Origin: Mantamonas sphyraenae STR306
Taxonomy: Eukaryota > Protista > CRuMs
Length of the DNA stretch: 64,000 nt
Direction of reading: 5' to 3'
Assembly: GCA_026936335.1 (NCBI GenBank)
Contig: JAPMXV010000012.1
Coordinates: forward strand, 186,001-250,000
Shown: piece after piece, positions 1,328 to 63,242 of the stretch
Numbering within the stretch: position 1 is the stretch's first letter
How the letters are laid out: the number at the start of each line of letters is the position of its first letter
Made by a program: the position numbers and the translations under genes
The notes under the pieces: model-generated
The model's input: the letters and a program-made list of their open reading frames with translations, nothing else
Database searches by the model: none
What the model was told of the DNA's origin: nothing

Positions 1328-3286
1328 TCATTTGGCATTGGTGGCAACGTCCAGGATGCCGTGTTGGAACGCAAGAGACTCGATGCAATGTTCGTTCAGG
1401 CGAGTGCGAGCGTGCATGGGATCCGTGTGCTCGTTGTGGTCGTCGTCGTCGTTTCTGTTGCCATTTGCACCTGAGTTGCCCTCCTCGGCCTCTCGAAGGG
1501 TGGGATGGGCGTTGAAAAAGCTGGTGCGCTCTTCGGTGCGGCAGATGACCTCAAAGGTTTGGTTCTGGGCGTGTGGAAAGACGTGGGCGAGGAGGTGATG
1601 GACTGCATGGGGCATGAGGAAGCCCTGGAGCTCGAGGGCATAGACACGCTGGATGGGTGAGGATGAGAGGGCTGTGGGAGCAAAGGCACTGGTGCTGCTG
1701 GCCGTGTTTGTGCGTTTGAGCTCCGAATTGGAAACGATGGTTGCGCGGCGCATGCTTGCGTTTTCAAAGGCGTGGGGAGACCAAAGCATGGGCACATCCT
1801 GTTTGGGGTCATACTCCCAATTGAGGAGGAGATCAAAGAGTCCTGTGACCTGGTCGGTGCCGTGGAAGAAGCACATGGTGCGGCGCTTTGCGGTTTCGCC
1901 GCGCTTGCGTGTCTGTGGGATGACACGGCCGGTGGTGTTGGGTGCGGTGTCGTAGGCACGAAAGTGGACGCCGAGTTGGTTCTGCAGATGGTCTTGCATG
2001 TGGTACCCCATGCCCTGGGCATAGGCGGCAATGTGCGGATGAGCCCCTGCCCCTTCGGCGGTGACGAGGATCATCATGGAGTTGTGCTGCAGGTAGAAGT
2101 ATGGACATGTTCCCTGGCGTGTGGTGTTGCACAGGGAACGGAAGGCACCCTCCCATTCGCGCTGTCGCTGCTGGAAGAAGCGCAGGGCTGCGCTCTCGTG
2201 CACACTGTGCAGATGCGGCTGTTTGGCCACTATACGGTGGTGTTGCTGCAGCAAACCCGACGGGAGGGCGTTGCTAGGGAAGCACCATGACCACATGGCT
2301 TTGAGAAACTCGCGCTGCAGGTCTTGAAGAGGCACAGAGGCGGAGGACGAGGTCAAGGGTGTGGAGGTCAATCGTTCGCCGCGTACAAACTCGCTCATGG
2401 CAGTGCTTTCCACCTGCGAGTCGATGACTGAGCACCAATCCAACGGATGCACAGAGGTGATGCGCAACCACTTTTTGACACTCCAATCCCAAGGGACCGA
2501 GTCCCATTCGCGAACCGAGGAGGAGGAGGAGGAAGAGGAGGAGGAGGAGGAGGAGGATGATGTGGATGTGGATGTGCCGGGTGCTGTGGGATGGTCGTCG
2601 TCGGTGGTGAGAACGGTGGCGCGGGTGGTCTTTGTGGAGCTGAGGACGGAGTTGAGCTTGGCTTCGATCTCGCTTTCGCTGAGCAGCTTTTTCGGTTTGC
2701 TGTTGCGTCTGCGGCTGGCAGCAAGCATGTCTGCCACCGTGTCAGCATCCATGTCCTGTGTGCTTCGGTATTCGTCCAGCCTGCGCTTGCGGCTGTGCTC
2801 AGCCTCGTCGGTTGCCTGGAGAAGAGCTCGCTCGGCAGCCTCGTCCAGCTCGTCGTCGTCTTCGTCCTGCACAACATCCAACGGAGGTTGGCTGCCACTG
2901 TTGGCCATCATCTGTTGCAGGAGAGTGAGTGCAGGCGAGGCTGTGCGGCTGCGGCCCTGTTTGCGGGGCATGAACTTTTTGAAGCTCTTGCGGCTTTTGA
3001 TCACTCGCGTCTTTGCGTTCCTGCGTTGCTTTGCGCCGCCGCTGTTGGCGCTGCCGTCTTCCATGGGCGGACACGAGGACGAACGTTCAACACGCATGCG
3101 TTTGAAGCTGCCTTGTGAGAGGGAGAAGCCTCTGGCGACGACGACGTCGTCGTCCTGATCTTCCTCCTCGTCCTCCTCGTCCTCGGTGTCGCTGTCACGG
3201 CTCCGCTTGATCCGCGTGTGCGACGTGACCGACATCTGCTGCGAGGCAACAAAGACCTCCTGGCTGAGAGACTCGCCCGCAGACAT
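1328..3286 (-). CDS. DONSON: DONSON (downstream neighbour of SON) replisome/CMG assembly factor
   Basis: PWDWSVKKWLRITSVHPLDW, WEGAFRSL, CPYFYL and DVPMLWSPHAFENASM match DONSON motifs. Likely start is MSAGESLSQ at 3286; the longer ORF-track start would overlap the opposite-strand gene. Confidence 0.85.
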   Translation of the reverse strand: MSAGESLSQEVFVASQQMSVTSHTRIKRSRDSDTEDEEDEEEDQDDDVVVARGFSLSQGSFKRMRVERSSSCPPMEDGSANSGGAKQRRNAKTRVIKSRKSFKKFMPRKQGRSRTASPALTLLQQMMANSGSQPPLDVVQDEDDDELDEAAERALLQATDEAEHSRKRRLDEYRSTQDMDADTVADMLAASRRRNSKPKKLLSESEIEAKLNSVLSSTKTTRATVLTTDDDHPTAPGTSTSTSSSSSSSSSSSSSSSVREWDSVPWDWSVKKWLRITSVHPLDWCSVIDSQVESTAMSEFVRGERLTSTPLTSSSASVPLQDLQREFLKAMWSWCFPSNALPSGLLQQHHRIVAKQPHLHSVHESAALRFFQQRQREWEGAFRSLCNTTRQGTCPYFYLQHNSMMILVTAEGAGAHPHIAAYAQGMGYHMQDHLQNQLGVHFRAYDTAPNTTGRVIPQTRKRGETAKRRTMCFFHGTDQVTGLFDLLLNWEYDPKQDVPMLWSPHAFENASMRRATIVSNSELKRTNTASSTSAFAPTALSSSPIQRVYALELQGFLMPHAVHHLLAHVFPHAQNQTFEVICRTEERTSFFNAHPTLREAEEGNSGANGNRNDDDDHNEHTDPMHARTRLNEHCIESLAFQHGILDVATNAK

Positions 3287-3352
3287 GCGTGTTTCCGTTT
3301 CATCGTCCACGTGGAGTCGCTGCAGGCGCATCGGGAACCAAGCGAAGCGAAA
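3287..3352. promoter_or_regulatory. Putative 66-bp bidirectional promoter/5'UTR region between DONSON and the ferredoxin gene (second copy at 5841-5905)
   Basis: Head-to-head ATGs at 3286 (-) and 3353 (+). Promoter function is inferred from geometry only. Confidence 0.5.
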
Positions 3353-4126
3353 ATGTTTGCTCGAATTGCGAAGCACCCTCAGCCACACACTGTGGCCAAA
3401 ACCGCCTGTGCGGTGGTGGGCATGAACGATGCACGTGGGCTGCACACGCTGGGTGGAGCCGTGATGGAGAGCAGCACGAGAGAAGCAGGTGGAGCACGCG
3501 AGGTGTCGCTTGCCAACACGGCGCCGCAGGTGAGCCGCCACGTGTTGGTGCGCTGTGGACTTCCGCGTGAGGAATGGCCAGCAAAGCCGGAATTGGAAAT
3601 CGAAGCGGTGCGGCTGTTGAACGAGGCAGTGATGCGTGAGAACGGCAGCAGTGTCAAAGTGACGTGCACCTCGCAGGCGTCGAGCCACGAGGATGCTCTG
3701 GATCTGATTGTGTTGCCGGACATGGTGCAGGTGACCCAGGTGCACACGGAGCAGTATGACGACGTGGCTGCGTGGCTGGCTGGCGTGCGCGAGCAGCCGG
3801 AAAAAGTGTGCACGGAGCCGCTTGGGCAGGCCCAGGCACTGGTTGTGTGCACCCATGGCAACCGAGACAAACGCTGTGGCACCCAGGGTGTGCAGACGTA
3901 TGAGAAGCTTGTGGAAGAGGTGGATGGTGACGATGTGGTTGTGCTGGAGTCGACTCACGTTGGCGGCCACGCACACGCACCCAACGTCATCTGCTATCCT
4001 GCATCTCAGTGGCTGGGCAAGCTGGACATCGACTCTGTTGCACATGTGTGCAACTGCGTCCTTGCAGGCGATGCGCCGCCAACCGAGTTTGATCGTGGGG
4101 TGGCCAAGGCTCCCGCGAACGAGTGA
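3353..4126 (+). CDS. Sucrase/ferredoxin-like (Apd1/Aim32 family) thioredoxin-like [2Fe-2S] protein
   Basis: CTHGNRDKRC (C-x8-C) plus HVGGH and PNVICYP form the bis-His 2Fe-2S signature of this family. Confidence 0.85.
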   Translation: MFARIAKHPQPHTVAKTACAVVGMNDARGLHTLGGAVMESSTREAGGAREVSLANTAPQVSRHVLVRCGLPREEWPAKPELEIEAVRLLNEAVMRENGSSVKVTCTSQASSHEDALDLIVLPDMVQVTQVHTEQYDDVAAWLAGVREQPEKVCTEPLGQAQALVVCTHGNRDKRCGTQGVQTYEKLVEEVDGDDVVVLESTHVGGHAHAPNVICYPASQWLGKLDIDSVAHVCNCVLAGDAPPTEFDRGVAKAPANE

Positions 4127-4283
4127 GAGAGCGGAGGGATTCATTTGTGTGTGTGTGAGGAAGGGAGGGAGGGAGGGGTGGGGCGGGGAGGTGCCGGCTA
4201 CCAGAGACGCTTCTGGGTGAAGCTGAGCACGAGATAGAGTGCGAGAGAGGTACGCAGCCCCAACCAACTCAACCAACGCAACG

Positions 4284-5366
4284 ATGAGCACCGCTGACCA
4301 GTTTGAGCATCCATGCGCAGTGATAAGCAGCACTGTAGTGGCCGTGTGTGGCTACTACGACGAGGCTGACCCGGAGAATGAGGGAGAAGGCAAAAAGGCG
4401 GCTGGCATTGTCGGATCCGGATTTTTCTGGGGGCAACCCGAAGGGAAGTGTTACCTGATCTCGTGCGAGCATGTGTGGAGGAATCACACTCCCTATGGCT
4501 TTGAGCTCCACAACAAGGAGCTGGTCTGGCTGACGGCAGCACAGCGATACAAATCGGTCGAGGACGGAAAAGTTTTCGAGGACGAGGACGGACGAGTTTT
4601 CTCAGAAGCGGAACCTGGAGAGCAACCGGCCCTGTTCTACGACAAACACAATGATCTCATCGCAGTCGAGCTCACTGATGATCAGCGTGCAAAAGTACGA
4701 GGAAACGGCGCAAAGTATATCACCTTGAGCATGGTGGACGCAGAGACATTGGAGCTGTACGGCTCCTTTCCGGTTCTGTACTTGTTCGGCTTTCCGAACG
4801 GAAGCACCGCTTCCTCGGAAACAAGTTTACCCATCATTCGGACCGCACGTCCGTGTAGTACTGTATCCGCCTCCTCACTAAAGGGAGGTGGGAAGTACAA
4901 CGTCGCGTGTGCCCCCGGAGATTCTGGTGGACCGGTTTGTCTTCTACACATGCCTGCAGAATCATGGCTTCACGAGAAGAAGAACACAGTGAACATGGGG
5001 ATAACCCGGCCATTTTGTTTGCTTGGCATCCACACGGGTGGTGGTCTCGCTGACTACGCGTCAATGTCAAGCAGCACTGAAGCCATCGGAAACTTCTCTG
5101 GAGCAGCCGCATTGCTGTCCATAGGCGACTGGACACCGGTGAATGCATACGAAGAGGCGCAACCACAGGCACAAGGACAAGCGCAACCGCAGGCACAAGA
5201 AGTGGCACAAGAAGAGGCGCAACCACAGGCACAAGGACAAGCGCAACCGCAGGCACAAGAAGTGGCACAAGAAGAGGCGCAACCACAGGCACAAGGACAA
5301 GCGCAACCGCAGGCACAAGAAGTGGCACAAGAAGAGGCGCAACCACAGGCACAAGAGGACGCGTAA
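4284..5366 (+). CDS. Trypsin-like (PA clan) serine protease with C-terminal Q/A/E tandem repeat, no obvious signal peptide
   Basis: GSGFF, SCEHV (His), DLIAVEL (Asp), PGDSGGPV (Ser) and LLGIHTGG. Intronless, ends in TAA. Confidence 0.85.
   Translation: MSTADQFEHPCAVISSTVVAVCGYYDEADPENEGEGKKAAGIVGSGFFWGQPEGKCYLISCEHVWRNHTPYGFELHNKELVWLTAAQRYKSVEDGKVFEDEDGRVFSEAEPGEQPALFYDKHNDLIAVELTDDQRAKVRGNGAKYITLSMVDAETLELYGSFPVLYLFGFPNGSTASSETSLPIIRTARPCSTVSASSLKGGGKYNVACAPGDSGGPVCLLHMPAESWLHEKKNTVNMGITRPFCLLGIHTGGGLADYASMSSSTEAIGNFSGAAALLSIGDWTPVNAYEEAQPQAQGQAQPQAQEVAQEEAQPQAQGQAQPQAQEVAQEEAQPQAQGQAQPQAQEVAQEEAQPQAQEDA
5151..5355 (+). repeat. Perfect 60-bp tandem repeat, ~3.4 copies (EEAQPQAQGQAQPQAQEVAQ)
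   Basis: Sequence lines starting at 5161, 5221 and 5281 are identical. Confidence 0.98.
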
Positions 5367-5432
5367 GAAAGCGATCAAGAGAGTTGTGTGACCACGGGAG
5401 GCGCTTCTAGGGAACCCGAGCACAGAAAGACT

Positions 5433-5840
5433 CAACGGAGGTTGGCTGCCACTGTTGGCCATCATCTGTTGCAGGAGAGTGAGTGCAGGCGAGGCTGTGC
5501 GGCTGCGGCCCTGTTTGCGGGGCATGAACTTTTTGAAGCTCTTGCGGCTTTCGATCACTCGCGTCTTTGCGTTCCTGCGTTGCTTTGCGCCGCCGCTGTT
5601 GGCGCTGCCGTCTTCTATGGGCGGACACGAGGACGATCGTTCAACACGCATGCGTTTGAAGCTGCCTTGTGAGAGGGAGAAGCCTCTGGCGACGACGACG
5701 TCGTCGTCCTGATCTTCCTCCTCGTCCTCCTCGTCCTCGGTGTCGCTGTCACGGCTCCGCTTGATCCGCGTGTGCGACGTGACCGACATCTGCTGCGAGG
5801 CAACAAAGACCTCCTGGCTGAGAGACTCGCCCGCAGACAT
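5433..5840 (-). pseudogene. Truncated DONSON 5' fragment (136 codons); frame stays open to 5067 through the antisense of the protease repeat
   Basis: MSAGESLSQ...SQPPL is near-identical to the DONSON N-terminus, then diverges at the 5433 junction. Confidence 0.8.
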
Positions 5841-5905
5841 GCGTGTTTCCGTTTCATCGTCCACGCGGAGTCGTTGCAGGCGCATCGGGAACCAAGCGAA
5901 GCGAA

Positions 5906-6684
5906 ATGTTTGCTCGAATTGCGAAGCAGCACCCTCAGCCACACACTGTTGCCAAAACCGCCTGTGCGGTGGTGGGCATGAACGGTACACGTGGGCTGCA
6001 CACGCTGGGTGGAGCCGTGATGGAGAGCAGCACGAGAGAAGCAGGTGGAGCACGCGAGGTGTCGCTTGCCAACACGGCGCCGCAGGTGAGCCGCCACGTG
6101 TTGGTGCGCTGTGGACTTCCGCGTGAGGAATGGCCAGCAAAGCCGGAATTGGAAATCGAAGCGGTGCGGCTGTTGAACGAGGCAGTGATGCGTGAGAACG
6201 GCAGCAGTGTCAAAGTGACGTGCACCTCGCAGGCGTCGAGCCACGAGGATGCTCTGGATCTGATTGTGTTGCCGGACATGGTGCAGGTGACCCAGGTGCA
6301 CACGGAGCAGTATGACGACGTGGCTGCGTGGCTGGCTGGCGTGCGCGAGCAGCCGGAAAAAGTGTGCACGGAGCCGCTTGGGCAGGCCCAGGCACTGGTT
6401 GTGTGCACCCATGGCAACCGAGACAAACGCTGTGGCACCCAGGGTGTGTGCAGACGTATGAGAAGCTTGTGGAAGAGGTGGATGGTGACGATGTGGTTGT
6501 GCTGGAGTCGACTCACGTTAGCGGCCACGCACACGCACCCAACGTCATCTGCTATCCTGCATCTCAGTGGCTGGGCAAGCTGGACATCGACTCTGTTGCA
6601 CATGTGTGCAACTGCGTCCTTGCAGGCGATGCGCCGCCAGCCGAGTTTGATCGTGGGGTGGCCAAGGCTCCCGCGAACGAGTGA
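5906..6684 (+). pseudogene. Second copy of the Apd1/Aim32-like gene, disrupted
   Basis: +2 (TG) frameshift at ~6445-6450 and HVGGH changed to HVSGH. The frameshift could be an assembly error. Confidence 0.65.
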
Positions 6685-6755
6685 GAGAGCGGAGGGATTC
6701 ATTTGTGTGTGTGTGAGGAAGGGAGGGAGGGAGGGGTGGGGCGGGGAGGTGCCGG

Positions 6756-7287
6756 CTACCAGAGACGCTTCTGGGTGAAGCTGAGCACGAGATAGAGTGC
6801 GACTGCGATTGGCCAGCCCTCCCACGTCCTTTCGTGTTGACCCACGGAGGATGAGGAGGAAGACGACGAGCCAGCAGATGATGAGGATGAAGTATGATGA
6901 TGATGATGATGATGAGAACGTGTAGCACCGCCGCTATTGCTGTGTGTGGACGACGACGATGGAGCAAGGAGGGAGGCGTCTGCCACCGAGTTGCCCCAGA
7001 GCTTCTCCTGCGAGTCCAGAGACCGTGAGGCAGCCATGGCCTCCTGTTTAAGCACCTCGATGCGCTGCAGACGCAATTCGATGGCATTCTGCAATTCGAT
7101 GGCCGGTTCAAACTCGCCTGTGGCCATGCGTTCCCGTTCCTGCTGTTCGCGGTCCACCAGCGACTTGACTTCCGACACACGCATTGCCGTCTCCCTACTC
7201 TCGTCCTCCAGACGAGCCAGCATGGTGGTGATCTGCTCCAAAGAGGCCAGTGGCACACCCACACAAGCAGACGAGGAGGATGATGAT

Positions 7288-7319
<32 letters not shown>

Positions 7320-9317
7320 GGGGACAAAGGACGACGCCCACTCGCAGCTATCTTGAGCAAGGTAGAATTCGTCGCCGTCACTGTCGACCGTGCATGTGTC
7401 TGACAGTGTGTGTTGGGCCGCCTTGCGCTCGCTGTACAGGTCTGGGATGAGCTGGCCGGCAAATTTGGTGCGCCAGTCGGCCAGGCAGGCGTTGATCTTG
7501 GCCACACGGAGCGGTTGGTAGGAACTCAGCATGGAAATGAAGGAGGAGGAAATCCAGCCACAGAGGTTGATGTGTGTGACCATGGTGACTCTGCTGGCGT
7601 CGCTGTTGTCCGGCAGGGGCTGGATGACAAACCCGGAAAGCAACAGGTTGGCGCGCACGTAGTGGCTCTGCAGGGGCACGGTTTGGTCTTCGTTGGGCAC
7701 ACTCTGGGCGTAGATGACGTAAGTGCCATCATCCAACAGCACAAAGCCACTGTCAGCCACCACGTCGCGCGGATAAAAGGCCAGGCGGCCCAGGAAGTTG
7801 AGGTGCAGCAATTGGCGATCTTCCGCAAGCTGCTTCACCACAGATCCATGCGAAAACATCTGCCAGCAGAGCGGATGGGAGGCCAGAGGACGGCGTGTGA
7901 GTGTGGACACACGGTGGATGTCAAGTGAATGGGAGGGTGGGTGAGGGTGCACACAGATGCAGTGTGGCAGTGGGGTGTATGGGGGGTGGGGGGAAAGTGG
8001 CGGTGGGTGACGGGAGGACGTGAACGCACTCGATCCCACTCGACTCGTGCGCCAATGTCTTTGACATAGTGAAAGACCACATGGGCAGGGGCGTTGACAA
8101 TGCCCACACCACGCACACAGGGCGCCTCTATTGTTGTGTCGTCGTACTCGGAGGAGACGAGACGGGAGATTTCGACTGCGCGAGGGTGGTGGTGGTGGTG
8201 GTCAGCACGACGGGACAACAACAACAAAATGAACGGTGGGACTCACCTCCATTCTTGACATCCACCAGTTCCCACGCATTGTCGCTGTCGTTGCTGTTGG
8301 ACGCATCCCCATGTCCAGCAGCACTCAGCATGGCGTCTACCAGCTCCTCGCGGCTTCGCATCGTCGTGAGGATTGCCTTGCCTCCACCAGCGCACAGCAA
8401 CGCAGCGGTGAGAAGGGAAGGGGAGGAAGGAGGGGGGAAAGAGGGGAGGAGGAGGAGGAGGAGGAGGGGTGGAGTGGTGGGGAAGGCAAAAGGATTCGGA
8501 TTTGGCATCATGTCAACATCGACAGAAAGGGGGGATCATCCATCCATGTTGCATTTCATCACTTGTTGGTTGTCTTGTTGCCTGTGGTTGCCTTTTCGTC
8601 GGCATTGGAGAGGGCACTCTGGTTTGCGGGGGTGCTTGTGACGGAGCCGTTGCCCGGCGAGCTTGCGCCAGGCGTGGTGGGGTTGGCAGCCAGATCCAAT
8701 GAACGCATGGCCGAGGAGCCGGAAGAGGTGGATGAGAGGTTTGCGGCTCCTGCATCCTTGCTCGGGGTGCTTGCCCCCTCGTCGTCGGCGGCAGCAGCGG
8801 CGGCGCCACCCGTCCCGCCAAAGGCACGAGGTTGCCCTGCCTCTCGAGGCGTCTCACACATCCGACAGTACTCGTCGCTGGCTGAGTTGCCATAGGCACA
8901 GGCAAAACAAACCCAGCCGCCGGTGCCTTGGACGGGCGAGGCAAAGGAGGCCATGGAAGAGTCCATGGAGCCGTCGTCAAGGCCGGCGTACGGATTGTAC
9001 CCAAAGCCCGAAGCGCCGGCGCCTGCTGAGCCGCCCCCCATCCCAGAGAGGGCGCCACTGCCGTCCAAATCCCCACCTGCCATGAGCATCATGGAGTTGC
9101 TCTGTCGCTGTGGGTTCTTCATGCTCTGGATTTCCTCCCAGATGCGCACCCTGTGGCCCACACTCTTGACGCCGATTTCCTTCAGGTGCTCCTCGTTGAT
9201 GCGCAGAAGGATGTACTCGTCAATGTCATGTTCGTCAAACATCTCGCTGTATGCGCGTGCCTTGCTGTATGGGATGCCCACGCTGATGAAAAACTCGGTT
9301 GCATCCCACCCACTCAT
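6756..9317 (-). CDS. SAM + RanBP2-type zinc finger + START lipid-binding domain protein (about 3 introns)
   Basis: SAM: YSEMFDEHDIDEYILLRINEEHLKEIGVKSVGHRVRI. ZnF: WVCFACAYGN...CRMCETPR. START: RVEWD, YPRDVV, YVRANLLLSGFVIQP, HINLCGWI. Introns at ~7860-8029, ~8176-8246 and one starting at ~8562. Confidence 0.8.
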
Positions 9318-51099: not shown

Positions 51100-53427
51100 T
51101 TAGGAGATGATGATGGGGAGGACAGAGATGAGGACGGTGAAGAGCAGGGTGAAGGCGACAGGGAAGGAGAGGGTGGGTGGCGACGAGCTGATGATGAAAT
51201 CGATGCACTTTTGGGCGCCTTTGGCCTGTGTGGACTGTCCAGGAGGGCAGATTGTGCACACGGTGGAGTTTGTGGTGCTTGTGAAAGTGCCCTCGAGGCA
51301 AAGGGTGCAGGATGAAGAAGGGGTGGAGGAGAAAGAGCCTGCCGGGCACGGGTAGCACTGAGTGGAGTTGGGTGGGCTGAAGGAGCCGGATGGGCAGGTG
51401 TGGCAGCCGGTGGAGTTGGCAAAGGAGCCTGCAGGGCACGGGGTGCATGAGGTGGAGCTGGGTGGGCTGTAGGAGCCGGATGGGCAGGTGTGGCAGCCGG
51501 TGGAGTTGGCGAAGGAGCCTGCAGGGCACGAAGGGTGCATGAGAGGTGGAGCTGGGTGGGCTGAAGGAGCCGGATGGGCAGGTGTGGCAGCCGGTGGAGT
51601 TGGCGAAGGAGCCTGCAGGGCACGGGGTGCATGAGGTGGAGCTGGGTGGGCTGTAGGAGCCGGATGGGCAGGTGTGGCAGCCGGTGGAGTTGGCAAAGGA
51701 GCCTGCAGGGCACGGGGTGCATGAGGTGGAGCTGGGTGGGCTGAAGGAGCCGGATGGGCAGGCGTGGCAGCCGGTGGAGTTGGCGAAGGAGCCTGCAGGG
51801 CACGGGGTGCATGAGGTGGAGCTGGGTGGGCTGAAGGAGCCGGATGGGCAGGTGTGGCAGCCGGTGGAGTTGGCGAAGGAGCCTGCAGGGCACGGGGTGC
51901 ATGAGGTGGAGCTGGGTGGGCTGAAGGAGCCGGATGGGCAGGTGTGGCAGCCGGTGGAGTTGGCGAAGGAGCCTGCAGGGCACGGGGTGCATGAGGTGGA
52001 GCTGGGTGGGCTGTAGGAGCCGGATGGGCAGGTGTGGCAGCCGGTGGAGTTGGCGAAGGAGCCTGCAGGGCACGGGGTGCATGAGGTGGAGCTGGGTGGG
52101 CTGTAGGAGCCGGATGGGCAGGCGTGGCAGCCGGTGGAGTTGGCAAAGGAGCCTGCGGCGCACATCACACAAGGGGCGATTGCAGACGCTGAAAAGCTTC
52201 CCAGAATGCACTGTGGAGTTGAAAAGAGGATAAAGTCCGTTGCACCCGCGTTTGTGTAGCCAGGGAATGCTCCTTCGGTGTTGCCCGACAAATGCACGGT
52301 TCCCGAGGGCGAAACAGCCACCGAGTGGCCAATCTCGTTGAAACTTGTACCGATCAGGGTTGTCCATGACAGTGTACTGTTGAACGTCCAGCTCTGGAGA
52401 AAGGCGTCGGTGCCGCCAGCGTTCGTCTGGCCGTCGAGAGAACCGCTTGCGGATCCGGCCACGTACACAACACCCGCGTTGGACACCTTGACACTGTTGG
52501 CTGTGTCTGTCCCGCTCGAACCAATGAGTTTTGACCATGTTCTGGTTCCGTTTGCCTGGATGCTGCTCAGGAAGCCGTCGGTGCCGCCTGCATTCGTCTG
52601 GCCGTCCAACGGCCCGTTCGTGCTGCCCACAACAAACACGGTGCTTCCCTCCAGGTCGACAGCCACGCCAAAGCCGTAGTCGGAACTGCTTGTGCCCCAC
52701 TGAAGTGACCAAATCATGGTGCCGTTCCCATCCCATCTGGACAAGGCGATGTCCGATCCTCCCGAACCGTCAACATTGCCACACACGTACACGTCCCCAG
52801 ATCGCGAGACTGTGATACCATTGGCTGAATCAAAGCCACTGGTTCCCCACAGCCGAGTCCACTCTTTGGTCCCGTTCTCGTGGAATCGGCTGAGGAGCAA
52901 ATCGTACGAACCAGCGCTGCTCTGGCCATCCAAGGGACCAGATGCCCGCCCAGCGACAAATACGCTGGCGCCATGAACTGCAACGCCAGTGGCACCGTCG
53001 AATCCGGTTGTGCCCCACAGGCGTGTCCACAGTTTGGTGCCGTTTGTGTCGAATTTTGTCAGCATCAAGTCGTTGCCGCCCGTGAACGTCTGACCGTCGA
53101 CTGCACCGGCAGCGCTTCCAGCAACAAAAACGCTGTTCCTAGCACCGATAGCAACACCGTTTCCCGAATCAAGTCCCGTGCTGCCCCACATTCGCGTCCA
53201 CACCCGCGCGCCGGACGCGTTCAATCTCGTCAAAATGAAGTCCGCAGTCGAGACAAATGGTTGTCCATCGACTGAACCACCAGCAGATCCAGTGATGTAC
53301 ACGTCTCCATCAATGCTCACAGTGACGGCATTAGGGCGGTCCGCTCCTGAAGATCCCCACTGTTGCACCCAGTCGGCAGCCGCAAAGGTGGCGACGAGCA
53401 AAACAACAACGGTTGCCTGGAGGATGC
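51100..53427 (-). CDS. Cell-surface protein: SBBP-like beta-propeller + GCC2/GCC3-like Cys-rich repeats + C-terminal hydrophobic anchor (frameshift ~51531-51544; first exon not located)
   Basis: About 7 blades of W.R.WGt.G.D.a.gva...g.vyvaG, then CPAGSF...C..CPSGS repeats. Upstream CTGAC..GCAG looks like a branch point and acceptor. Confidence 0.8.
51335..52160 (-). repeat. 90-bp tandem repeat, about 9 copies (CPAGSFANSTGCHTCPSGS[Y/F]SPPSSTSCTP)
   Basis: ggagttggc[a/g]aaggagcctgc recurs every 90 bp; one unit is 94 bp. Confidence 0.97.
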
Positions 53428-53959: not shown

Positions 53960-54001
53960 GGTTCATTCGAGGCGTTGGCGTTTGGAGGAGGAGGAGGAGG
54001 A
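53960..54001 (+). repeat. Orphan copy of the 3' end of the 59150 gene (SSSSKRQRLE* on the minus strand); partner at 59147-59192
   Basis: ggttcattcgaggcgttggcgtttggaggaggaggag versus ggttcattcaaggcgttcaaggcgttggcgtttggaggaggaggag. Confidence 0.8.
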
Positions 54002-54004
54002 TTC

Positions 54005-57000
54005 TCACATCTCGTTCAACTCCACCCCAGCCACCTCCACCCCCTTCGCATCCGTTGGACTTAGCCCCACCACCCGTTCCAGAACACCCACCAACGGGCT
54101 CTCTGGATGCCTCACCAGGTAGCTCCACACCCTCCCCTTCATCGGTTCCGTACACACTGCCGCCACTTCGTCCGCCCTCTCTGTCGTTGCCCCACCCCTC
54201 ACAAGCTGGACCATCTCCTCACCAGCACCAGCTTTTCCTACTCCCTTCAGCACGTCCACCCACAGTCTCTCCTCCACCGAAGAAAGGACCGCTTGGGCCA
54301 CCTCCCGATCGATTCCTCCTTCCAAACACGCCTGCCTCACCCTCACCCTCACCCACAACTCCCGTACCACAAAAGCGACACACACCACCGCAATCGACAC
54401 GGACAGTCCCACTGTGACCTCCACCCATCCGTTTGCCCCACCGTCGGCCCCTGTCAGGAACAACATGCCAGCCAACAACAGCACCGTCGTCTGCATCAAC
54501 AACACAGCCTCCAGCCTGTTCTCTGCCCGCGTACCAAACGGCTGCACCTCGTGGTGCAGCACTGTCGACACAGCCATGATCAGCAAACCCAGCACTGCCT
54601 GCAGACCCGGCTGCTCCGTCGCAAACAGCTGCACTGCCACCACAAGCACACGCCGTACCATCACAGCGATCTCAAACCAATAGCTCTCATCCCTGTACTT
54701 GCCGTACAGAGATCCAAACATCTCGCCAAATCCAGCCTGACCTCTGCGATCCCGCTCACGTCCTGCCACCAGGACCCACACAAAGCCTGCGGGGATACCC
54801 ACCACATATATCGCCGCGAAAACAACCGCAGGGACCAGCAAGCGCGCATGCACGCCCCCATCCACCCAGCACACGACCTCCGGGTCCGCCTCGAGAACCG
54901 CCATCCCGGCGCGCACTTGGATGCAGTCAAACACCTGCAGCACACGCGTGCAAAGTGTGATGTACAACAGCCCCATTGCAAACACAATCTCGTTGATCAA
55001 GTAGCGCAGTGTCTGCTGGTCGACAAGTTCGGCCTCTGTGAACACGCGCGACACCTGCCACCGCGCCAATTCCAACGCAAATTGAATTCGGCTCTGCCCG
55101 CGCGCCTCTGGCGGCGCACAAAAGGCTGCATGCCGTGCTGAAAAGCCTGCCGCGTGCCTGCGTACCCATGCCGCGTGCGCGTGCTGCATCGCCACCCGCA
55201 CGCACAACGCCAGCACAACAGCGGCCGGAAGCGCCATTGTCAACCAGAACCTGGCTTCAAAGTCCCATCCCTCCACTGTGCACTCGGGCGCGGTCGTCTC
55301 GATGTTGAGACTGGCCAGGGAAAAGGTCGCCAGGACCTCTTGCACAGCTGCCGGCCACTGGAGGCGAAAGTCGGCCAGCGCACCAATGACTTGCAAGTTG
55401 GTCACGGACACCATGACGAGGTTGCTACGCGACAGCCCTCCCTCGCTCTCGCGCACCTGAGCACGAACCCAAAACACAAACACCACGCACAGCAGCGCAA
55501 GCACGGACGCGGACCCGCTCGCCCCGGCTGCGCATGCCTGACACAGCTCGCCGAGCCTGTAGAACCCGGGTGCACAGCGGCCACACAACAGACCTTGGTA
55601 CCCCTCTGCGCACGACGACGACGACGAGTTGCTGCTGCCCCCTGGACACGACGATGGCACTGCGCAGCGCACGAAGCGAAACTCGCTGCCAACGCCCGTC
55701 TGAAAATACCCCGCGGCTGCGCGTGGGGGCTGTCCCAGCCCTGCGCACGTCGCCCCGACGGGGCATGCCTCGCATGCTTCGCCGTTGCGCCCCGTGGGTG
55801 CGAAAAACGACGGGCGACACACGCAATCACTCAGGATACGCGGCACCCCGGACGGCACAAATGCGTTTGCCGGACACACCACTCCGCCTGCCAAAAAGGT
55901 GACGCCAAATGCGGTGAACTGCACGCCGTTGAGAGACACTTCAACCGCCACCGTCCCGCTCGGCAGCACAGGCGCGCGCACGTCAATGTGTGTGCTGGAT
56001 ACCACAGTTCCGTTGACCGCCACACTGCCAAAGCGGACCACACACACGCCTGTGTCTGCAAACGAGGCTCCTGCGATGGCAACCTGCACCTGCTGGCCCA
56101 GCGGTGCCACGTCAGGAAAAAGGCTGCGCACCTGCGGCGCTGCGTAAATGTCCATCTGCACTCCGCTGGAGAATGACGTGCCGTCCAGGCTCACTTCCAC
56201 TTGCACGTTGCCTTGCTGCAGGCCGCTGGCTGGCGTTGTGCACGTCACGCTGCTCGGCGTTGCAAAACGAGCGGGGGCTTGCACCGCACCGGCAAACCGA
56301 CAGAGCTGACCCGTTCCCTCCACAAAGCCATGCCCAGACACAGTCACCTCTGTGCCTCCGCTGGTGGGGCCGAGCCGCGGCCACACGCCCGTGACCTCAA
56401 ATGTGTCCACTGACGACCCAGTGGCCCAGTCATGGCCGTTCAAGCTGATTTCCACCTGGGCCCTGCCGAAGGCCAGTGACGGTAGCTCACACTCAACCGA
56501 CGTCGACGTACGCCACGACGCCGGAACAACGATCACGCGACCATCTGACGACGTGAAGCGTACCTGAATGGTGCCAGTATCGGCAAACGTGCGCGGCAAT
56601 TCCGAACTCACAGTCATGGTCACCGGCGGCCGTGCTGATCCGTACAATGCAGGGACGACTTCAGGCCGCACAGTGCCTATTCCATGTACGGGATACACCG
56701 AAAACGTGACGGTGCCAGCGACACTCTCGACTCCGTTGGGAAACACGGCCACGCTCAACTGACGAAGCGAGCCAGGCGCCAACACCCCGAGCGACGCAAA
56801 CGACGGTGTCTGAAACGTCACCGCAGTCGCGCCAAGGTGCACAGAGCCTACGTCTAGCGTGCCCAGTGTGGCTCGTGCCTTGTCTGCAGCCGGGCGTAGG
56901 CCAGTCGCGCTGGCCGTGACGTTCGTTCCGCCCGTCTGCGGCCCCGATGCTGGCATCAAGCTCACCACCGTTGCGTCAAACACGCGCAGCGGGCCATTGG

Positions 57001-59046
57001 TCACGGAAATCCACTGCTCGGCGCCGTTGAACGACACCTGCACCTCCACATCTGCTGCTGGCATCGCCGGCATCAAGCAAACAAGTGTTCCGTTGGCAAA
57101 CAGATTCGCTTGGGGCGCGACTCGGATTCCAAATCGACAGCGAACGTGGTCTTTGGCGAGGTCGTACGGCAAGCCCGCCACGGAAAGGGGCAGAAGCAGG
57201 CCACCCGTTGCGCGTGCAGAATGCAGGTTCAATGCAAACGAGGCGTTGACCGACCGAAACACCGGTGGTGTCGCCAATGGGTTTGTAAATGCGCTGGGAA
57301 TGGCCACAGACACCTCTGTGCCCAGTGCCTCCAGCGCAGGTGTGCTGCAATACATGCGCGTGGCAGACTCAAACGCACACTCTTCTGCGACCCGCCCCGC
57401 GAAGTGTGCCTTGTCGCCGGCTTGAAAGTGCAGCCCTGTCAGAGTGACGTTTGTGGCACCGCTTGCGGGGCCCAGTAGAGGGGCGATGGTGTCGATGTAC
57501 GGCCAAGTCAACGGACACGACGACGACCCGGGTCCTGCGTTGGAGCTGCCGTTTGCGCACGGGCTGCATGCAGCGAGGGACGACGCCGTACTGAACGTGC
57601 CTTGCGCACACGTGGCACACTGTGCACCCGCTGTGGATGCTGACGGTGCTTGCGATGGGCCGGCAGATACGATTCGCTGTCCAGCAGCACAGTTCTGCAG
57701 CATCGCGAAGAACATAAAGCTGGGCACCTGGCCAGCCGTTACGAACGCATACGACCCGGGAAGCACGGCGATGCACGAGGGGGTGATTTTCAGGGTGCTC
57801 TCCCACACACGTCGTTCCAGCTGAGCTCCACTGGTGGCATTCAGTCGCGTCACTGTGGCCGAGTTGCCAGCCCCGGTTCCGGGTTTGTTTTGCCAGCCAG
57901 AGGTCACCACGGAGCCGTCGTTCGCCAAGTCGACGCCTGTGAAGCCGTTGTTCTTGGTTTCGGTCGACACGTACACCCATCGCCGCGTCCCAGCCGCGTC
58001 CACCTTTGCACAGAACCCTCCACGCCCTTCGGCGCCCGTCGGCTGACCGGCAAACGTGCCACGTGCGTCGCCGCACACGACGACGGTGTTGTCGTGTGCG
58101 TCAACAAGCATTGGCTGATTGCCCAACGTGTCGCCGTTGGTCGACCCAAACGCATTCTCCCACACACGCTGCTGCGTCGTCACATTGAAACCGGCCACCA
58201 AGATAGAGCCCGAGTTTGCTCCACTGGACACGGTGCCTGCCACGTACGCCAGTTGCAGCGATTCGACCACCGCCACGCGCACAAAATTCACGTTGACACC
58301 CGGCGGCGAGAACTGCTTCGTGGACACCTCCACTCCTGTTGCTGGGTCAAACTTGGTCACAAACATGTCCATGGGTGCGTTCTGCGTGTTGCCTGCAAAC
58401 GTGCCGGACACGATGGTCCCGCTCTGTTCGCGCGGCACAAATGTCAGCGACCTTTCCCCCCCAAATTGTGTGCATGGCCATGCACGAAGTATGTACGCAC
58501 CGCATACAGGCCTTTGGCCGTCAGAAAGACACCATACGTGGTGACGAGGCTGTCGGGACCCCAGAAACGAATCCAAGCGACGGTGAAGTTTTCGAACATC
58601 AACGCGACGAAAGGCGCCTGGAAGCCCTCCGAACGCGTGCTGTTTGCACGCGGGAGGCCGTTCCGCGGCAAAAGATCGCCTCGACTATGGCCAACGATTG
58701 CGATCCCCGCCATGGAAGCCTCCATGTGGACCGCGTTGACATATGTTTCCGGGTTCGAGGCCGCGCCGCTGAGAAGGATCGTCGACAACGCGGTGCCGTT
58801 TGCAGCGACACGCCGCACAAACCCATCCACAAGACCAGGGCCCTTTTCGGCGTTGTCCAGCGCGGAGCGTGTGTAGCCCACCATCACTACAGTGTTGTTT
58901 GACGCGGCCACGAGCGACGTGGCTTGCGAATTGTTGTCGCCACCACCCCAAATCAGGGTGTATTCGGCCCACACGGGCAGTGTGGCGGAGAGAATGAGCA
59001 CACCTAGGATGCAAACCAGGGAGTGTTGGGGCAAGCCTTGGTGCAT
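54005..59046 (-). CDS. Large receptor-like protein: signal peptide, beta-propeller, Cys-rich region, about 6 IPT/TIG domains, Cys-rich region, about 7-9 TM helices (frameshift at C7 run 58456-58462)
   Basis: Signal MHQGLPQHSLVCILGVLILSATLPVWA. IPT repeats (P..GP.sGgT.vtv.G.gF). CAEGYQGLLCGRC, and FGSLYGKYRDESYWFE in the TM region. Confidence 0.85.
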
Positions 59047-59149
59047 TTGGTTTTTCAGTTGGATTCCGTTGCGGGGTCGACCGGGTGATGGAAACTGTGC
59101 TCGGGTGGATGGGGAGGTGAGAGGAAAGGGGAGGGGAGAGTAAAGGGGT

Positions 59150-60468
59150 TCATTCAAGGCGTTCAAGGCGTTGGCGTTTGGAGGAGGAGGAGCAGGAGGA
59201 AGGGTCTTTGCGCTTGGGGAGGGTGAAGGAGGGGATGGGGTAGGCGTTGACGAGTGCGACGGTGGTGGGGCGGGTGGTGATGTGGGGTGTGATGCGGTCG
59301 ATGAGGGTGTGGAGGAGGGTGTGCAGTGTGGCGTCGCTGGGTTTGGGGTTGTCGAGCCAGGCGATCGTGAGGGAGAGGGATGTGACACCGCGGGTGAGGG
59401 TGTTCTCGATGGCCTTGGACGCCTGTTGGTAGGTTAGGTGTGGCCTAAGGAGGCGGACAAAGAAGGCCAGGTCGACAGGCGGCACGCCAACGTTGCCAAG
59501 CGCCAGGATGATGTGTCGCAGCAGGGACTTCAGGCTGCCGTTGTTGATCAACTCACGCAGTGCCTGGTTCTCGTGTGTGTGCTGATGGCGAGGTTGCTTG
59601 GCTGCGCGTGCCTTCATGTGTGCCAGCAGCGTCTGGAACTCCCGCGCCGTGCAGCTGCCACGCTCGTCTGCGGTCGTGCACCAGCCACTGCGCACAGACT
59701 CTGGATGCCACTCTTCCACCTTGGTGGTGGTGAGGTGGTGGTCGTAGTCGCATTTTGTCCAGTGTGGGTCGCCGTCGTTGTCAGCAGGGCGTCGTGCTTT
59801 CTGCAGCCACAGCTGGGTCTGCTTGTGCTCCTTCCAGGTGGTGGGATGGGGCCTGTTGCCAAGAGTGTCCATCTCTGTCATGAGCAGGTGGAGGAGGGCG
59901 TAGTTGGGGTCTCCGTGGTCGTGTGGCTCCTCCAGCCAGCACACCTTCAACCCAGCCTTTGTCACACCCATGGCCAGACCTGCGCTGATGATGGCTTTTG
60001 TGCATGCCTTTTGATCCATGTCACGGCCGAGAAGGGCGAGGCAGAAGGCCATGTCTCCTTGGGAGAGGAGAATGTTGGCCATTGCGAGAAGGATTTGTCG
60101 GAGCAGCGTGCTCAGGGTGCCATGGCAGACCAGAACACGCGCTTGCAGGGTCATGAGGTCTGGGATGTTGTCGATGGGATGCTCGTTGGCCAGGGTGTGC
60201 ATGTGCCTCAGCAGTGCCGTGTGCTCCTTCTTGTTACTGTGCATGCGCTCGCTCTTGCGCCTTGTTGTCCTGCCACTGCGCACAACGCCATCTGGCAGTC
60301 CAACCTCCTCCGCCATCTTCTCCTCCTCTGTAGGCTCGGGCAAAACACGCTCGGGGATTTCGAGGGTGTTGACAGCGTCGTATGTGATGGGGCGTGTAGT
60401 GATGTGGGGGGTGATGCGGTCGATGAGGGTGTGCAGGAGGGTGTGCAGGAAGGCGTCGCTGCCGACGG
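59150..60468 (-). CDS. Uncharacterised internally repeated helical protein, apparently 5'-truncated (first ATG ~60316)
   Basis: Repeats LSTLLRQILLAMAN/LKSLLRHIILALGN and two copies of LHTLLHTLIDRITPHITTRP. The frame is open to ~60468 with no ATG. Confidence 0.55.
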
Positions 60469-60541: not shown

Positions 60542-63242
60542 TCACTTGTCCGAGGTTTCTTGGCCTTTCTGCACTTTGGACTCGTCGTTGTCATCGGTGA
60601 TCATCATCATCGATTCCAAGAGACCACCGTAGTACTCAGTGTGGTTCTGACCATGCACCACATACACCTGTTTCTCTCCTTCCTTCGTCCACTCCTTCAG
60701 CTGCTCTTCCAGTTTGGGTTTCGGGCCCTTGACGCTCGTGAAGCCAAACACAATGTGTACCTTGCCATTCTCGCCTGCCAGCGGCTGAAACGTCTCACGG
60801 ACAACCTCCTGATGCTGCATCACTTTCTCGTACTCGTCTTTGATCAGTGTAAGGCTCACCTTGTCGCTTGCGTGAATCCCCTGCTCGCTGAACTTGCACT
60901 GGATGCACTCAACCACCACCCCGTCGACTGCGGGATGGACAACTATGACATCTGCAAACGGTGCGTTGGTCCCATTCATCATCTGCATGCTTGTCTGCAG
61001 GCCATCCGGATTCGCCTGGACCAACTTGGCCACCTCCTCCTTCACAGTCTTTGTTTGTGCGGGGAAGCGTTCCCTATAATCCTGCAGGTCTATCGTCACC
61101 CTGGCTTTCAGGTTTGTGGAGTACTGAATGTGGTCCAGGTTGAAGCGCAATGATCCTCTGTGCCACCAAAACCCGTCCAGCAATGCGTAGTCCGGTGGGC
61201 TCTCGATCAGTGCGAGAGATCGCAACACGTGAAAGTATTGTGATTGCTTCTCATAGTGTTGCCACAATGCAACCTCGTTGAAGTCGGTGATGCGCCGGAG
61301 CAGTTCACTCTTGCTAGCCGCTTCACGCCCTTGCAGACCGAGGGGAATCGGCATCACCTGGCCTGCGTGGTGGACCAGCAAACCACAACTCATGTGTTCT
61401 TGCACAGTGTTTCCACCAACCTTGTCACCAATTTGAATTGTCTCCTTGAACAGGTGCATCCGCGTGAGCGTTTTGGCCAGATCTGCCGGGAATTCTGCTG
61501 TGTACGTGTCATGCCTGATTTCTTGAACAGCGCGTTGAAGATCAGATTGAATGGTATCCAGCGATAGGGAATGAACCAGCTTAAACAGCTTTGCAATCCC
61601 CTCAACCGCTCTCGGCACACCGTACAGCTGCCGCAGAGTTTGCAACAGCAGAGTGCGAAGGACTTTCCGTCGATGGACTTCATCTGGATGGTCTTTTTCC
61701 CGATGTTCTTCATGTCGATGGTCTTCATCGTGCTTCAAGTTTGCAAACCCGAGCACAGCATCCAGGGATTCCTTGAGACTGAGTGTGGGCACAGCCAGCG
61801 GCAAGTTGCGGTATGTCGACTCGCGATCAAGGGCACCCATCAGGTGCAGGTCCCGTGTGCCCGCAACGGCAACCACGGCACGACACGGATGTTCTTGGTC
61901 GTTATACACACCACTGATCCTGCTGACGCTGTTGATAATGCCAGTGGCCGAGTTGATCACCGGTTGCAAATTCGATTCCAAGGACTTGTATGGATCAGCC
62001 AGCTTCTGCACTTCGTCGTACCCAAGATACAGAAGTACAGGGGCACCTCCGTTCTGACTCTGTGCGTGCTTAACGATCAACTCGGCTGCGTCAACGGGTG
62101 TTGGCAGCGATTCCAGCGACTGCTCAAGTTGCACCACGTGTTTCTCACGGAGACGAGCGTTGTCACCCCGGTCAACAGCGTAGTCGTACAGCATGCGCAC
62201 ACCCAGACCATAATCACCCCATCTCCTCTCAATAACTGGCTTGTTCTGATTGTTCAGCGTCAAAAGCAGTGGCAGCACCTGCAGATGCGGTACCTTTTCC
62301 TGTGTGACTTGTCGCAGAGCCTCCGTCAGCTCCATCAGCATGCGCGACTTGCCAGTACCAGACATGCCAGTTACTGAGTACAGAACCGTGTCACCCCGGT
62401 GTTGAGTCATTTTTTTGCGAAGTTGGGAGTCAACGCGCAAACGAAAGCTTTTCAGTGCATCCTGCCGATTCTGAAGTGGGATTTGCATGGCCAATTCCGT
62501 GTCGATGACGTCTCCCAAAGGCGTGTTCTTCTTGCTGAGATCGAAGCAGGGCTCCATCTCTAACAATTCGGCAAATTGCTCCACGGACGTCAGCTCCACC
62601 CGCCCCACTGCGTGTTTGTCAATGCACAGGGTGTCAGCGACGTCATGGACGGCTCAAAGAAACGTTGGAACCTACCGTGGGGCGAAATGTGTGCAGCTGC
62701 TTCCCACAAGCCTGTGGGGAGTGGGGCGGGTGTCAGCAAAATGGCGCGGCGCGAAGAATTGTGGGTGTCAGGAACTCACGCTCATGGTGCGCCTGGGCCT
62801 TCTGCTGTCCCGTTCTCGCGTCATCCACCCAAAGTTGGTACACCGCAACAGCATCCTCATCCCCCTTTCTCTTTGCATCCAGCAGCAACGCTTGGGCTTC
62901 TTTCACTTTTGCTTCGGCTTTTTCGACTTCCGCCATGGCTTTTTCGATTTCCGCTTCTTCTTTCGCCTTCGCAACTTCCGCCTTTGCCTCAGCCACTTCC
63001 TTCTCTGCCTTTGCCACTTCGGCCTCTGCCTTTGCCAATTCCTTCTCCTTCTCATCCACAAGACTCTGCAAGGCCTCCTTCTCTGCTTGTGGGCTGTGTC
63101 GCAGCTGTTGGCGAGCTTGCCCAAGTTCCGCGGACAACGACTCTACACGGTCGCGCAACCTCTCCAGGCGCTCCTCACGCTTGTTCAGCTTGCTTCTGGC
63201 CTCCAAGAACAACTCCTCAGCACTGATAGTGGCTGTGGACAT
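60542..63242 (-). CDS. Crinkler/CR-type effector-like protein: coiled-coil header + P-loop NTPase + PD-(D/E)xK-like REase
   Basis: Walker A GMSGTGKS, Walker B LYLGYDEVQ, GVPRAVE and C-terminal NAPFADV...CIQCKF. Two 68-bp introns (62712-62779, 62608-62675) join the header in frame. Confidence 0.72.
62900..63045 (-). repeat. Imperfect 21-bp heptad repeats (AKAEAEV/AEKEV)
   Basis: Recurrent gccacttc/gcctttgcc units encoding coiled-coil heptads. Confidence 0.65.

Follow-up and report, generated by a model that had tools for sequence, protein, structure and literature searches.

A protease gene between two kilobase-size direct copies of host genes in Mantamonas sphyraenae: a probably heterozygous insertion, tentatively attributed to replicative break repair

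How did a protease gene come to sit between two 1.37-kb direct copies of ordinary host genes in the genome of a protist? The question is raised by a 64,000-nucleotide stretch of Mantamonas sphyraenae STR306 (contig JAPMXV010000012.1, positions 186,001 to 250,000 of the forward strand), hereafter the window, whose first letter is position 1. Mantamonas is a marine flagellate that branches deeply, close to the root of Amorphea. The answer that we favour, with a confidence just short of even, is that the insertion is real, is probably heterozygous and arose by replicative break repair in which the template was switched twice. The locus consists of the following parts:

1331-3286, minus strand: DONSON gene, intact, crossing the left edge of copy 1 (PDB 8q6o, 8q6o_R, E 5e-10)
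2879-4244, no strand: repeat copy 1, 1,366 bp, with the intact sucrase/ferredoxin-like gene (alignment, domain matches)
3353-4126, plus strand: sucrase/ferredoxin-like gene, intact copy (PF06999, E 1.6e-29)
4199-4244, minus strand: displaced START 3′ tail at the right end of copy 1, resembled by the 3′ end of the insert
4245-5432, plus strand: single-copy insert, 1,188 bp, made up of a 39-nt leader, the protease open reading frame (ORF) and a 66-nt trailer; GC below that of host genes
4284-5366, plus strand: intronless chymotrypsin-fold serine protease, 360 aa, H63/D124/S214, PDC-S45-like
5145-5355, plus strand: about 3.5 tandem 60-nt units that encode the protease tail of Gln/Ala/Glu-rich 20-residue repeats
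5389-5432, plus strand: final stretch of the insert, an in-register but diverged copy (~75%, 3 indels) of the last 46 nt of the repeat
5433-6802, no strand: repeat copy 2, 1,370 bp, with a truncated DONSON 5′ fragment, a damaged ferredoxin copy and the functional START tail
6756-7860, minus strand: START-domain gene, last exon, intact, crossing the right edge of copy 2 (PF01852, E 2.5e-14)

Global alignment places insert and copies, the latter in direct orientation, exactly where the original prediction, made from the sequence letters, had drawn them. The copies differ by 10 substitutions and by indels of 1, 3 and 2 nt (divergence 0.7%; 98.8% identity by BLAST); the earlier count of about ten substitutions was right, but it had left out the three indels, one of which shifts the frame of the ferredoxin-like gene in copy 2. 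The repeat edges are sharp, with 0 nt of microhomology at both junctions. By alignment, the insert is found nowhere else in the window, and across the assembly searched (25,061,354 bases in 78 contigs) it occurs once, whether sought as DNA, as protein or with a five-sequence profile, which answers the earlier proposal to look for further copies in the genome. The repeat sequence is confined to these two places in the whole assembly and does consist of ordinary host DNA: the 5′ end of DONSON, a shared promoter region, the sucrase/ferredoxin-like gene and the final 47 nt of the START coding sequence (CDS), identities now backed by PDB and Pfam matches. As had been noticed before, neither terminal inverted repeats nor poly-A nor a transposase were seen. 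Because the repeat edges lie within the CDSs of two different genes, DONSON, the sucrase/ferredoxin-like gene and START each keep one intact copy. This had been read as a non-destructive route of adding genes. No host gene is indeed lost; such sparing, however, is the geometric outcome of any duplication across an intergenic gap and thus need not imply design, and survivor bias can yield it without a dedicated system.

Is the structure real? The M. sphyraenae genome is diploid and was sequenced in four runs (PacBio, paired-end, mate-pair and RNA); its assembly, made by FALCON from 112x PacBio reads, comprises 25.06 Mb in 78 contigs with a mean of 321,299 bp (PMC10492846). Four runs of one study (X1 to X4) cover the stretch; they are stored as contigs, which renders depth crude. 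The left junction is contained in an X1 contig (4215-5180) and the right junction in contigs of X2 (5326-5462) and X4 (5425-5615), and the X2 contig that follows begins exactly at 2879, the branch point. Read-contig flanks deviate from the assembly at 2782, 2822, 2840 and 6809. Two variants, 4078 G>A (X1, X3) and 3302 A>G (X2, X4), are absent from both assembled copies, and X1 splits into three branches around 4078-4082, with depths of about 12, 13 and 6; hence, three alleles of the repeat exist. Together with the decay of copy 2 (see below), the third allele and the junction k-mers in separate libraries bear out the earlier view that this is no plain read-duplication artefact. That view was to be given up if reads failed to cross the junctions or if the copies were concatenated haplotypes. 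Each junction is present in read contigs, and three alleles are more than a plain concatenation of two haplotypes would account for, but no single record in the X1-X4 contigs spans the whole structure. The evidence for integration is the long-read assembly, in which the insert is flanked by the duplicated host segment; the junction k-mers are present, unphased by spanning reads, and in short-read contigs an integrated cassette and a free 2.55-kb circle are indistinguishable, as both produce the same k-mer graph.

The same runs speak to zygosity and expression. Depth over the insert is 11.5 in X1, versus 54 and 43 in the flanks, and 13.8 in X3, versus 40 and 42, that is, 0.2-0.35 of the flanks. 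This suggests that one homolog carries the cassette and the other is empty, making the insertion probably heterozygous. The shortfall below 0.5 may stem from library bias or from some cells having lost the cassette when the copies recombined. In X2, depth varies from gene to gene (DONSON 12-14, ferredoxin 66, protease 405, START 94), which marks it as the probable RNA run, though it is labelled only as guessed DNA. Contig depth is unsuited to ranking genes, and X2 is used here solely for the point that the protease gene is probably transcribed.

The duplicate itself has aged. When the substitutions are polarized against a third allele, represented by the path that most reads follow, 8 are specific to copy 2 and 2 to copy 1; of the coding changes specific to copy 2, 5 are non-synonymous and 1 is synonymous. 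Among the amino-acid changes is G203S, which alters the HxGGH motif of the ferredoxin-like protein, and a 2-nt insertion at 6444-6445 imposes a +2 frameshift on the same gene, although the indels may be polishing errors. Judged from these changes, the right-hand ferredoxin copy looks decayed, which fits a spare gene decaying over a time similar to that of allelic divergence.

A further, older trace is found at the 3′ end of the insert, whose last 44 nt (5389-5432) align with the repeat's last 46 nt (4199-4244), the START tail, at ~75% identity with three indels and in register to within 4 nt. The alignment score was equalled by 2 of 5,000 shuffles, and the end-anchored score of 36 exceeds the maximum of 29 among 21,581 genomic tiles; with about 16 junction comparisons made, the end homeology remains significant. 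This short copy has diverged far more than the 1.37-kb copies and carries frame-breaking indels. Despite the in-register match, the insert is followed by the left end of the repeat and not by the continuation of the target. Either chance homeology drew in a circular or tandem donor, or the protease had resided at the START tail before and was later re-flanked; the latter variant would entail a past short duplication at the START tail, with DNA of an empty allele re-flanking it afterwards. The insert had originally been described as a unique segment: single-copy it is, but the old target-tail copy and the probable heterozygosity had been missed.

What kind of event would leave such a locus? In replicative break repair, chromosome-templated DNA synthesis would have departed at 4244, inside the START tail, and continued on a putatively foreign template, the protease gene. 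It would then have returned to the chromosome, on the sister or the homolog, at a point 1,366 bp upstream and thus have copied this stretch a second time. The resulting allele would survive because its edges lie in different genes and leave each host gene whole, with the spare ferredoxin gene free to decay. This is reminiscent of the 'cycle of templated insertion' (Li et al. 2020, PMC7025897), which has the same geometry: a distant template is inserted, the host segment is re-replicated on both sides and no element enzyme is needed. In line with such a mechanism, the insert holds no element enzyme or terminus. The published cycles, however, are somatic cancer events with templates from the same genome (PMC7025897), whereas the template here has no donor in the assembly, is apparently foreign, spans a complete expressed gene and carries an old copy of the target's end at its own end. 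Of the two routes first proposed, template switching leads; Campbell integration explains less, as its circle needs the same junctions.

Several points weigh against break repair. Template switching often leaves microhomology, of which there is none at either edge; no donor copy was found in the assembly, as DNA or by profile, nor in viral or metagenome contigs; no record spans the whole structure; and the insert corresponds almost exactly to one transcript unit, which suits retroposition better. Were several loci to show this layout, a dedicated process would be more probable than chance repair. The first step of the genome searches is lossy, and the model of PDC-S45, the candidate defence family discussed below, missed this very protease, leaving absences from the assembly unproven.

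Alternatively, a long-duplication mobile element, either a Dualen-like long interspersed nuclear element (LINE) or a retrocopy, may have acted in trans, which we consider unlikely. The 1,366-bp duplication falls within the variable, up to kilobase-size target-site duplications of non-LTR (long terminal repeat) elements, and an intronless insert consisting of a 39-nt leader, an ORF and a 66-nt trailer would suit a retrocopy. R9 of rotifers generates a target-site duplication of 126 bp. Dualen insertions in Chlamydomonas come close to the present geometry, with ~1 kb of host DNA directly duplicated around the insert and a median flank duplication of 900 bp (Lopez-Cortegano et al. 2023, PMC9977147); unlike them, the insert encodes neither reverse transcriptase (RT) nor endonuclease and lacks a LINE 3′ end. 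Under the lossy first search step, telomerase was the sole RT match in the assembly, with no LINE or other non-LTR RT, and no APE endonuclease (PF14529) was found. Nor was there a poly-A or simple-repeat 3′ tail at the insert, a source gene in the assembly, a further copy of the insert's 3′ motif in the assembly, or a hairpin above shuffles at the junctions or insert ends; the ends are unique and fold no better than shuffles. The lack of introns carries little weight, since most genes of the Mantamonas genome are intron-free anyway (PMC10492846). The assembly does contain, on many contigs, about 25 ORFs of 1,500-2,000 aa (for example, at C12:157185-157361) that terminate with a TnpB/Fanzor-type zinc ribbon, as well as some shorter ORFs of this type. 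These ORFs are a ready source of breaks, but nothing links them to the locus; a literature search returned no paper mentioning both Mantamonas and Fanzor. As a side observation, telomerase is the only RT that we found, yet the genome paper lists LTR retroelement families among the repeats.

Other element classes were set aside. A DDE DNA transposon is at odds with the lack of terminal inverted repeats, of a short target-site duplication and of multiple copies. For a Helitron or HUH element, the long duplication is accompanied by no end hairpin above shuffles, and the PF14214 search, run without a positive control, came back blank. Resemblance to integron-cassette or Helitron ends is limited to short motifs and was judged to be chance.

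Lower again in our ranking, and likewise unlikely, stands a Campbell-type single crossover of a 2.55-kb circle carrying repeat and cargo, or else introgression of the cassette from a related lineage that already had the protease at its START tail. The geometry is the exact product of a single crossover, yet the origin of the circle requires the same two non-homologous junctions. The divergence of the copies is on the order of the allelic differences in the reads, and the changes specific to copy 2 all lie left of 3963, while one specific to copy 1 is at 4082, a distribution that a crossover close to the right end could produce; post-duplication decay explains the copy-2 changes equally well. 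Bacterial integrative elements carry a displaced fragment of their target gene. The old target-tail copy resembles such a fragment, but its frame-breaking indels mean that it is not a working replacement. More generally, the locus shares with Campbell integration, Cryptons and bacterial integrative elements the direct repeats, a partial resemblance of the insert end to the target end and an intact target gene; it differs in that the repeat is 1.37 kb of ordinary genes rather than a short att site and in that the end copy has decayed. No candidate for a tyrosine recombinase (PF00589) was found in the assembly by the same lossy first-step search, whose positive control was detected in 14/14 cases. 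An assembly artefact, with two haplotypes or a free 2.55-kb circle wrongly joined into the chromosome sequence, is very improbable: the identical k-mer graph, an insert depth under half that of the flanks and the lack of a spanning record would allow for it, but it is countered by the 112x PacBio FALCON assembly, by three repeat alleles, for which two haplotypes are insufficient, by both junctions being present in independent libraries and by the gene-damaging changes in copy 2.

What, then, was inserted? The protease ORF takes up all of the insert except 39 nt on its 5′ side and 66 nt on its 3′ side. The protein matches Trypsin_2 weakly, but strongly by language-model features (0.97), and H63, D124 and S214 are conserved among the relatives. 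An earlier structure model from 5 sequences had been uninformative (predicted local distance difference test, pLDDT, 34); the present one (pLDDT 66) matches DegP, DegS and thrombin at E 4e-7. The protein thus displays the hallmarks of clan PA chymotrypsin-like proteases: a double beta-barrel, a His-Asp-Ser triad and a G-x-S-G motif. A signal peptide is not evident, and the final 70 residues form 20-residue Gln/Ala/Glu repeats. The DNA of this tail is also open in another frame (5143-5391), giving an 82-aa His/Lys/Arg-rich peptide that is probably a by-product of the repeat.

Judged by sequence, the kin of the protease are distant, with a small number of proteins from protists or fungi coming first and bacterial ones after them. 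A single-sequence query retrieved no close homologues from a set of 5.8 billion proteins, and among 1.84 billion representatives only four relatives reached E<=1e-3. The chrysophyte Pedospumella contributes one of them, a second lies among eukaryotic neighbours on a metagenomic contig, and the other two are from short contigs. No match was obtained in viral or metagenome contigs. A profile search also reaches bacterial proteases; in a tree, the few relatives above stand apart from these, but the branch leading to the Mantamonas protein is very long and of unsure placement. GC content at third codon positions is 0.59, versus 0.69-0.81 in six host genes. Since its spread is patchy, its composition deviates and it has no paralogues, a horizontal, foreign origin is suggested; the immediate donor may be another eukaryote. 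One relative (P0002) is carried by four independently assembled contigs, all of which start 54-78 bp ahead of the gene, a hint of a repeat or branch point at that spot; no repeats were found around P0002.

PDC-S45, a single-gene system, is a candidate for phage defence in PADLOC (PMC12429752). Its profile matches the Mantamonas protease at E 1.6e-5 over positions 107-238 of 293, and the protease's closest relatives at E 1e-22 to 1e-36. Like PDC-S45, Trypsin_2 and clan PA members, the Mantamonas protein is a stand-alone chymotrypsin-fold protease with an intact triad; its eukaryotic host, long branch and Gln/Ala/Glu repeat tail set it apart, and PDC-S45 itself is a candidate only. The Mantamonas protein is most likely a cytosolic protease with a putative role in defence or cell death.

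Does the geometry recur? No second kilobase-size case was detected in 251 kb, comprising the window and 187 kb around five loci near NACHT genes; a candidate second case in the window (53960-59192) revealed no DNA repeat of >=40 nt at 75%. At C38:88920-90381, a 240-bp direct repeat (96%) surrounds 982 bp with small ORFs, possibly an older, smaller case of the same geometry; about 4 kb beyond it begins an inverted repeat of at least 1.5 kb (97%). A 579-bp inverted repeat (99.8%) with arms 6.1 kb apart lies at C44:215943-223244. On the same contig (C44:207219-211114), a 371-aa ORF that by eye resembles an IS630/Tc1-type transposase stands beside a same-strand 581-aa TnpB/Fanzor ORF, and no flanking direct repeat was found there. 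Elsewhere in the window, minus-strand long ORFs at 60542-63242 combine a P-loop NTPase with a nuclease-like C-terminal part, interrupted by one frame break, and resemble Crinkler/RHS-type NTPase-nuclease proteins; an array of 90-nt units at 51179-52262, encoding cysteine-rich surface-protein repeats, shows frame shifts in the assembly.

Taken by itself, the locus is a variant of a known rearrangement, set apart by the unusual length of its flanking duplication and by the older target trace. A bolder proposal, and a rather improbable one at this stage, would be a recurrent route, free of integrase and RT, by which the gene-dense diploid genome of Mantamonas acquires single genes of defence type with a bacterial ancestry. 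On that proposal, a short homeologous end would direct cassettes to gene termini; they would duplicate host DNA over 0.1-1.4 kb or more while sparing genes, stay heterozygous and be able to pop out by recombination between the copies, and giant Fanzor-type nucleases may supply the breaks. If the geometry recurs genome-wide, the mechanism becomes directly testable with public long reads. The physical entry of foreign genes into eukaryotic chromosomes is rarely visible. Here, the scar of entry can still be read: the two junctions survive, the same cell probably holds an empty allele, a spare gene dates the event by its decay, and the cassette end retains an older trace of the target. The cargo, for its part, connects candidate anti-phage proteases of bacteria with a protist lineage close to the root of Amorphea.

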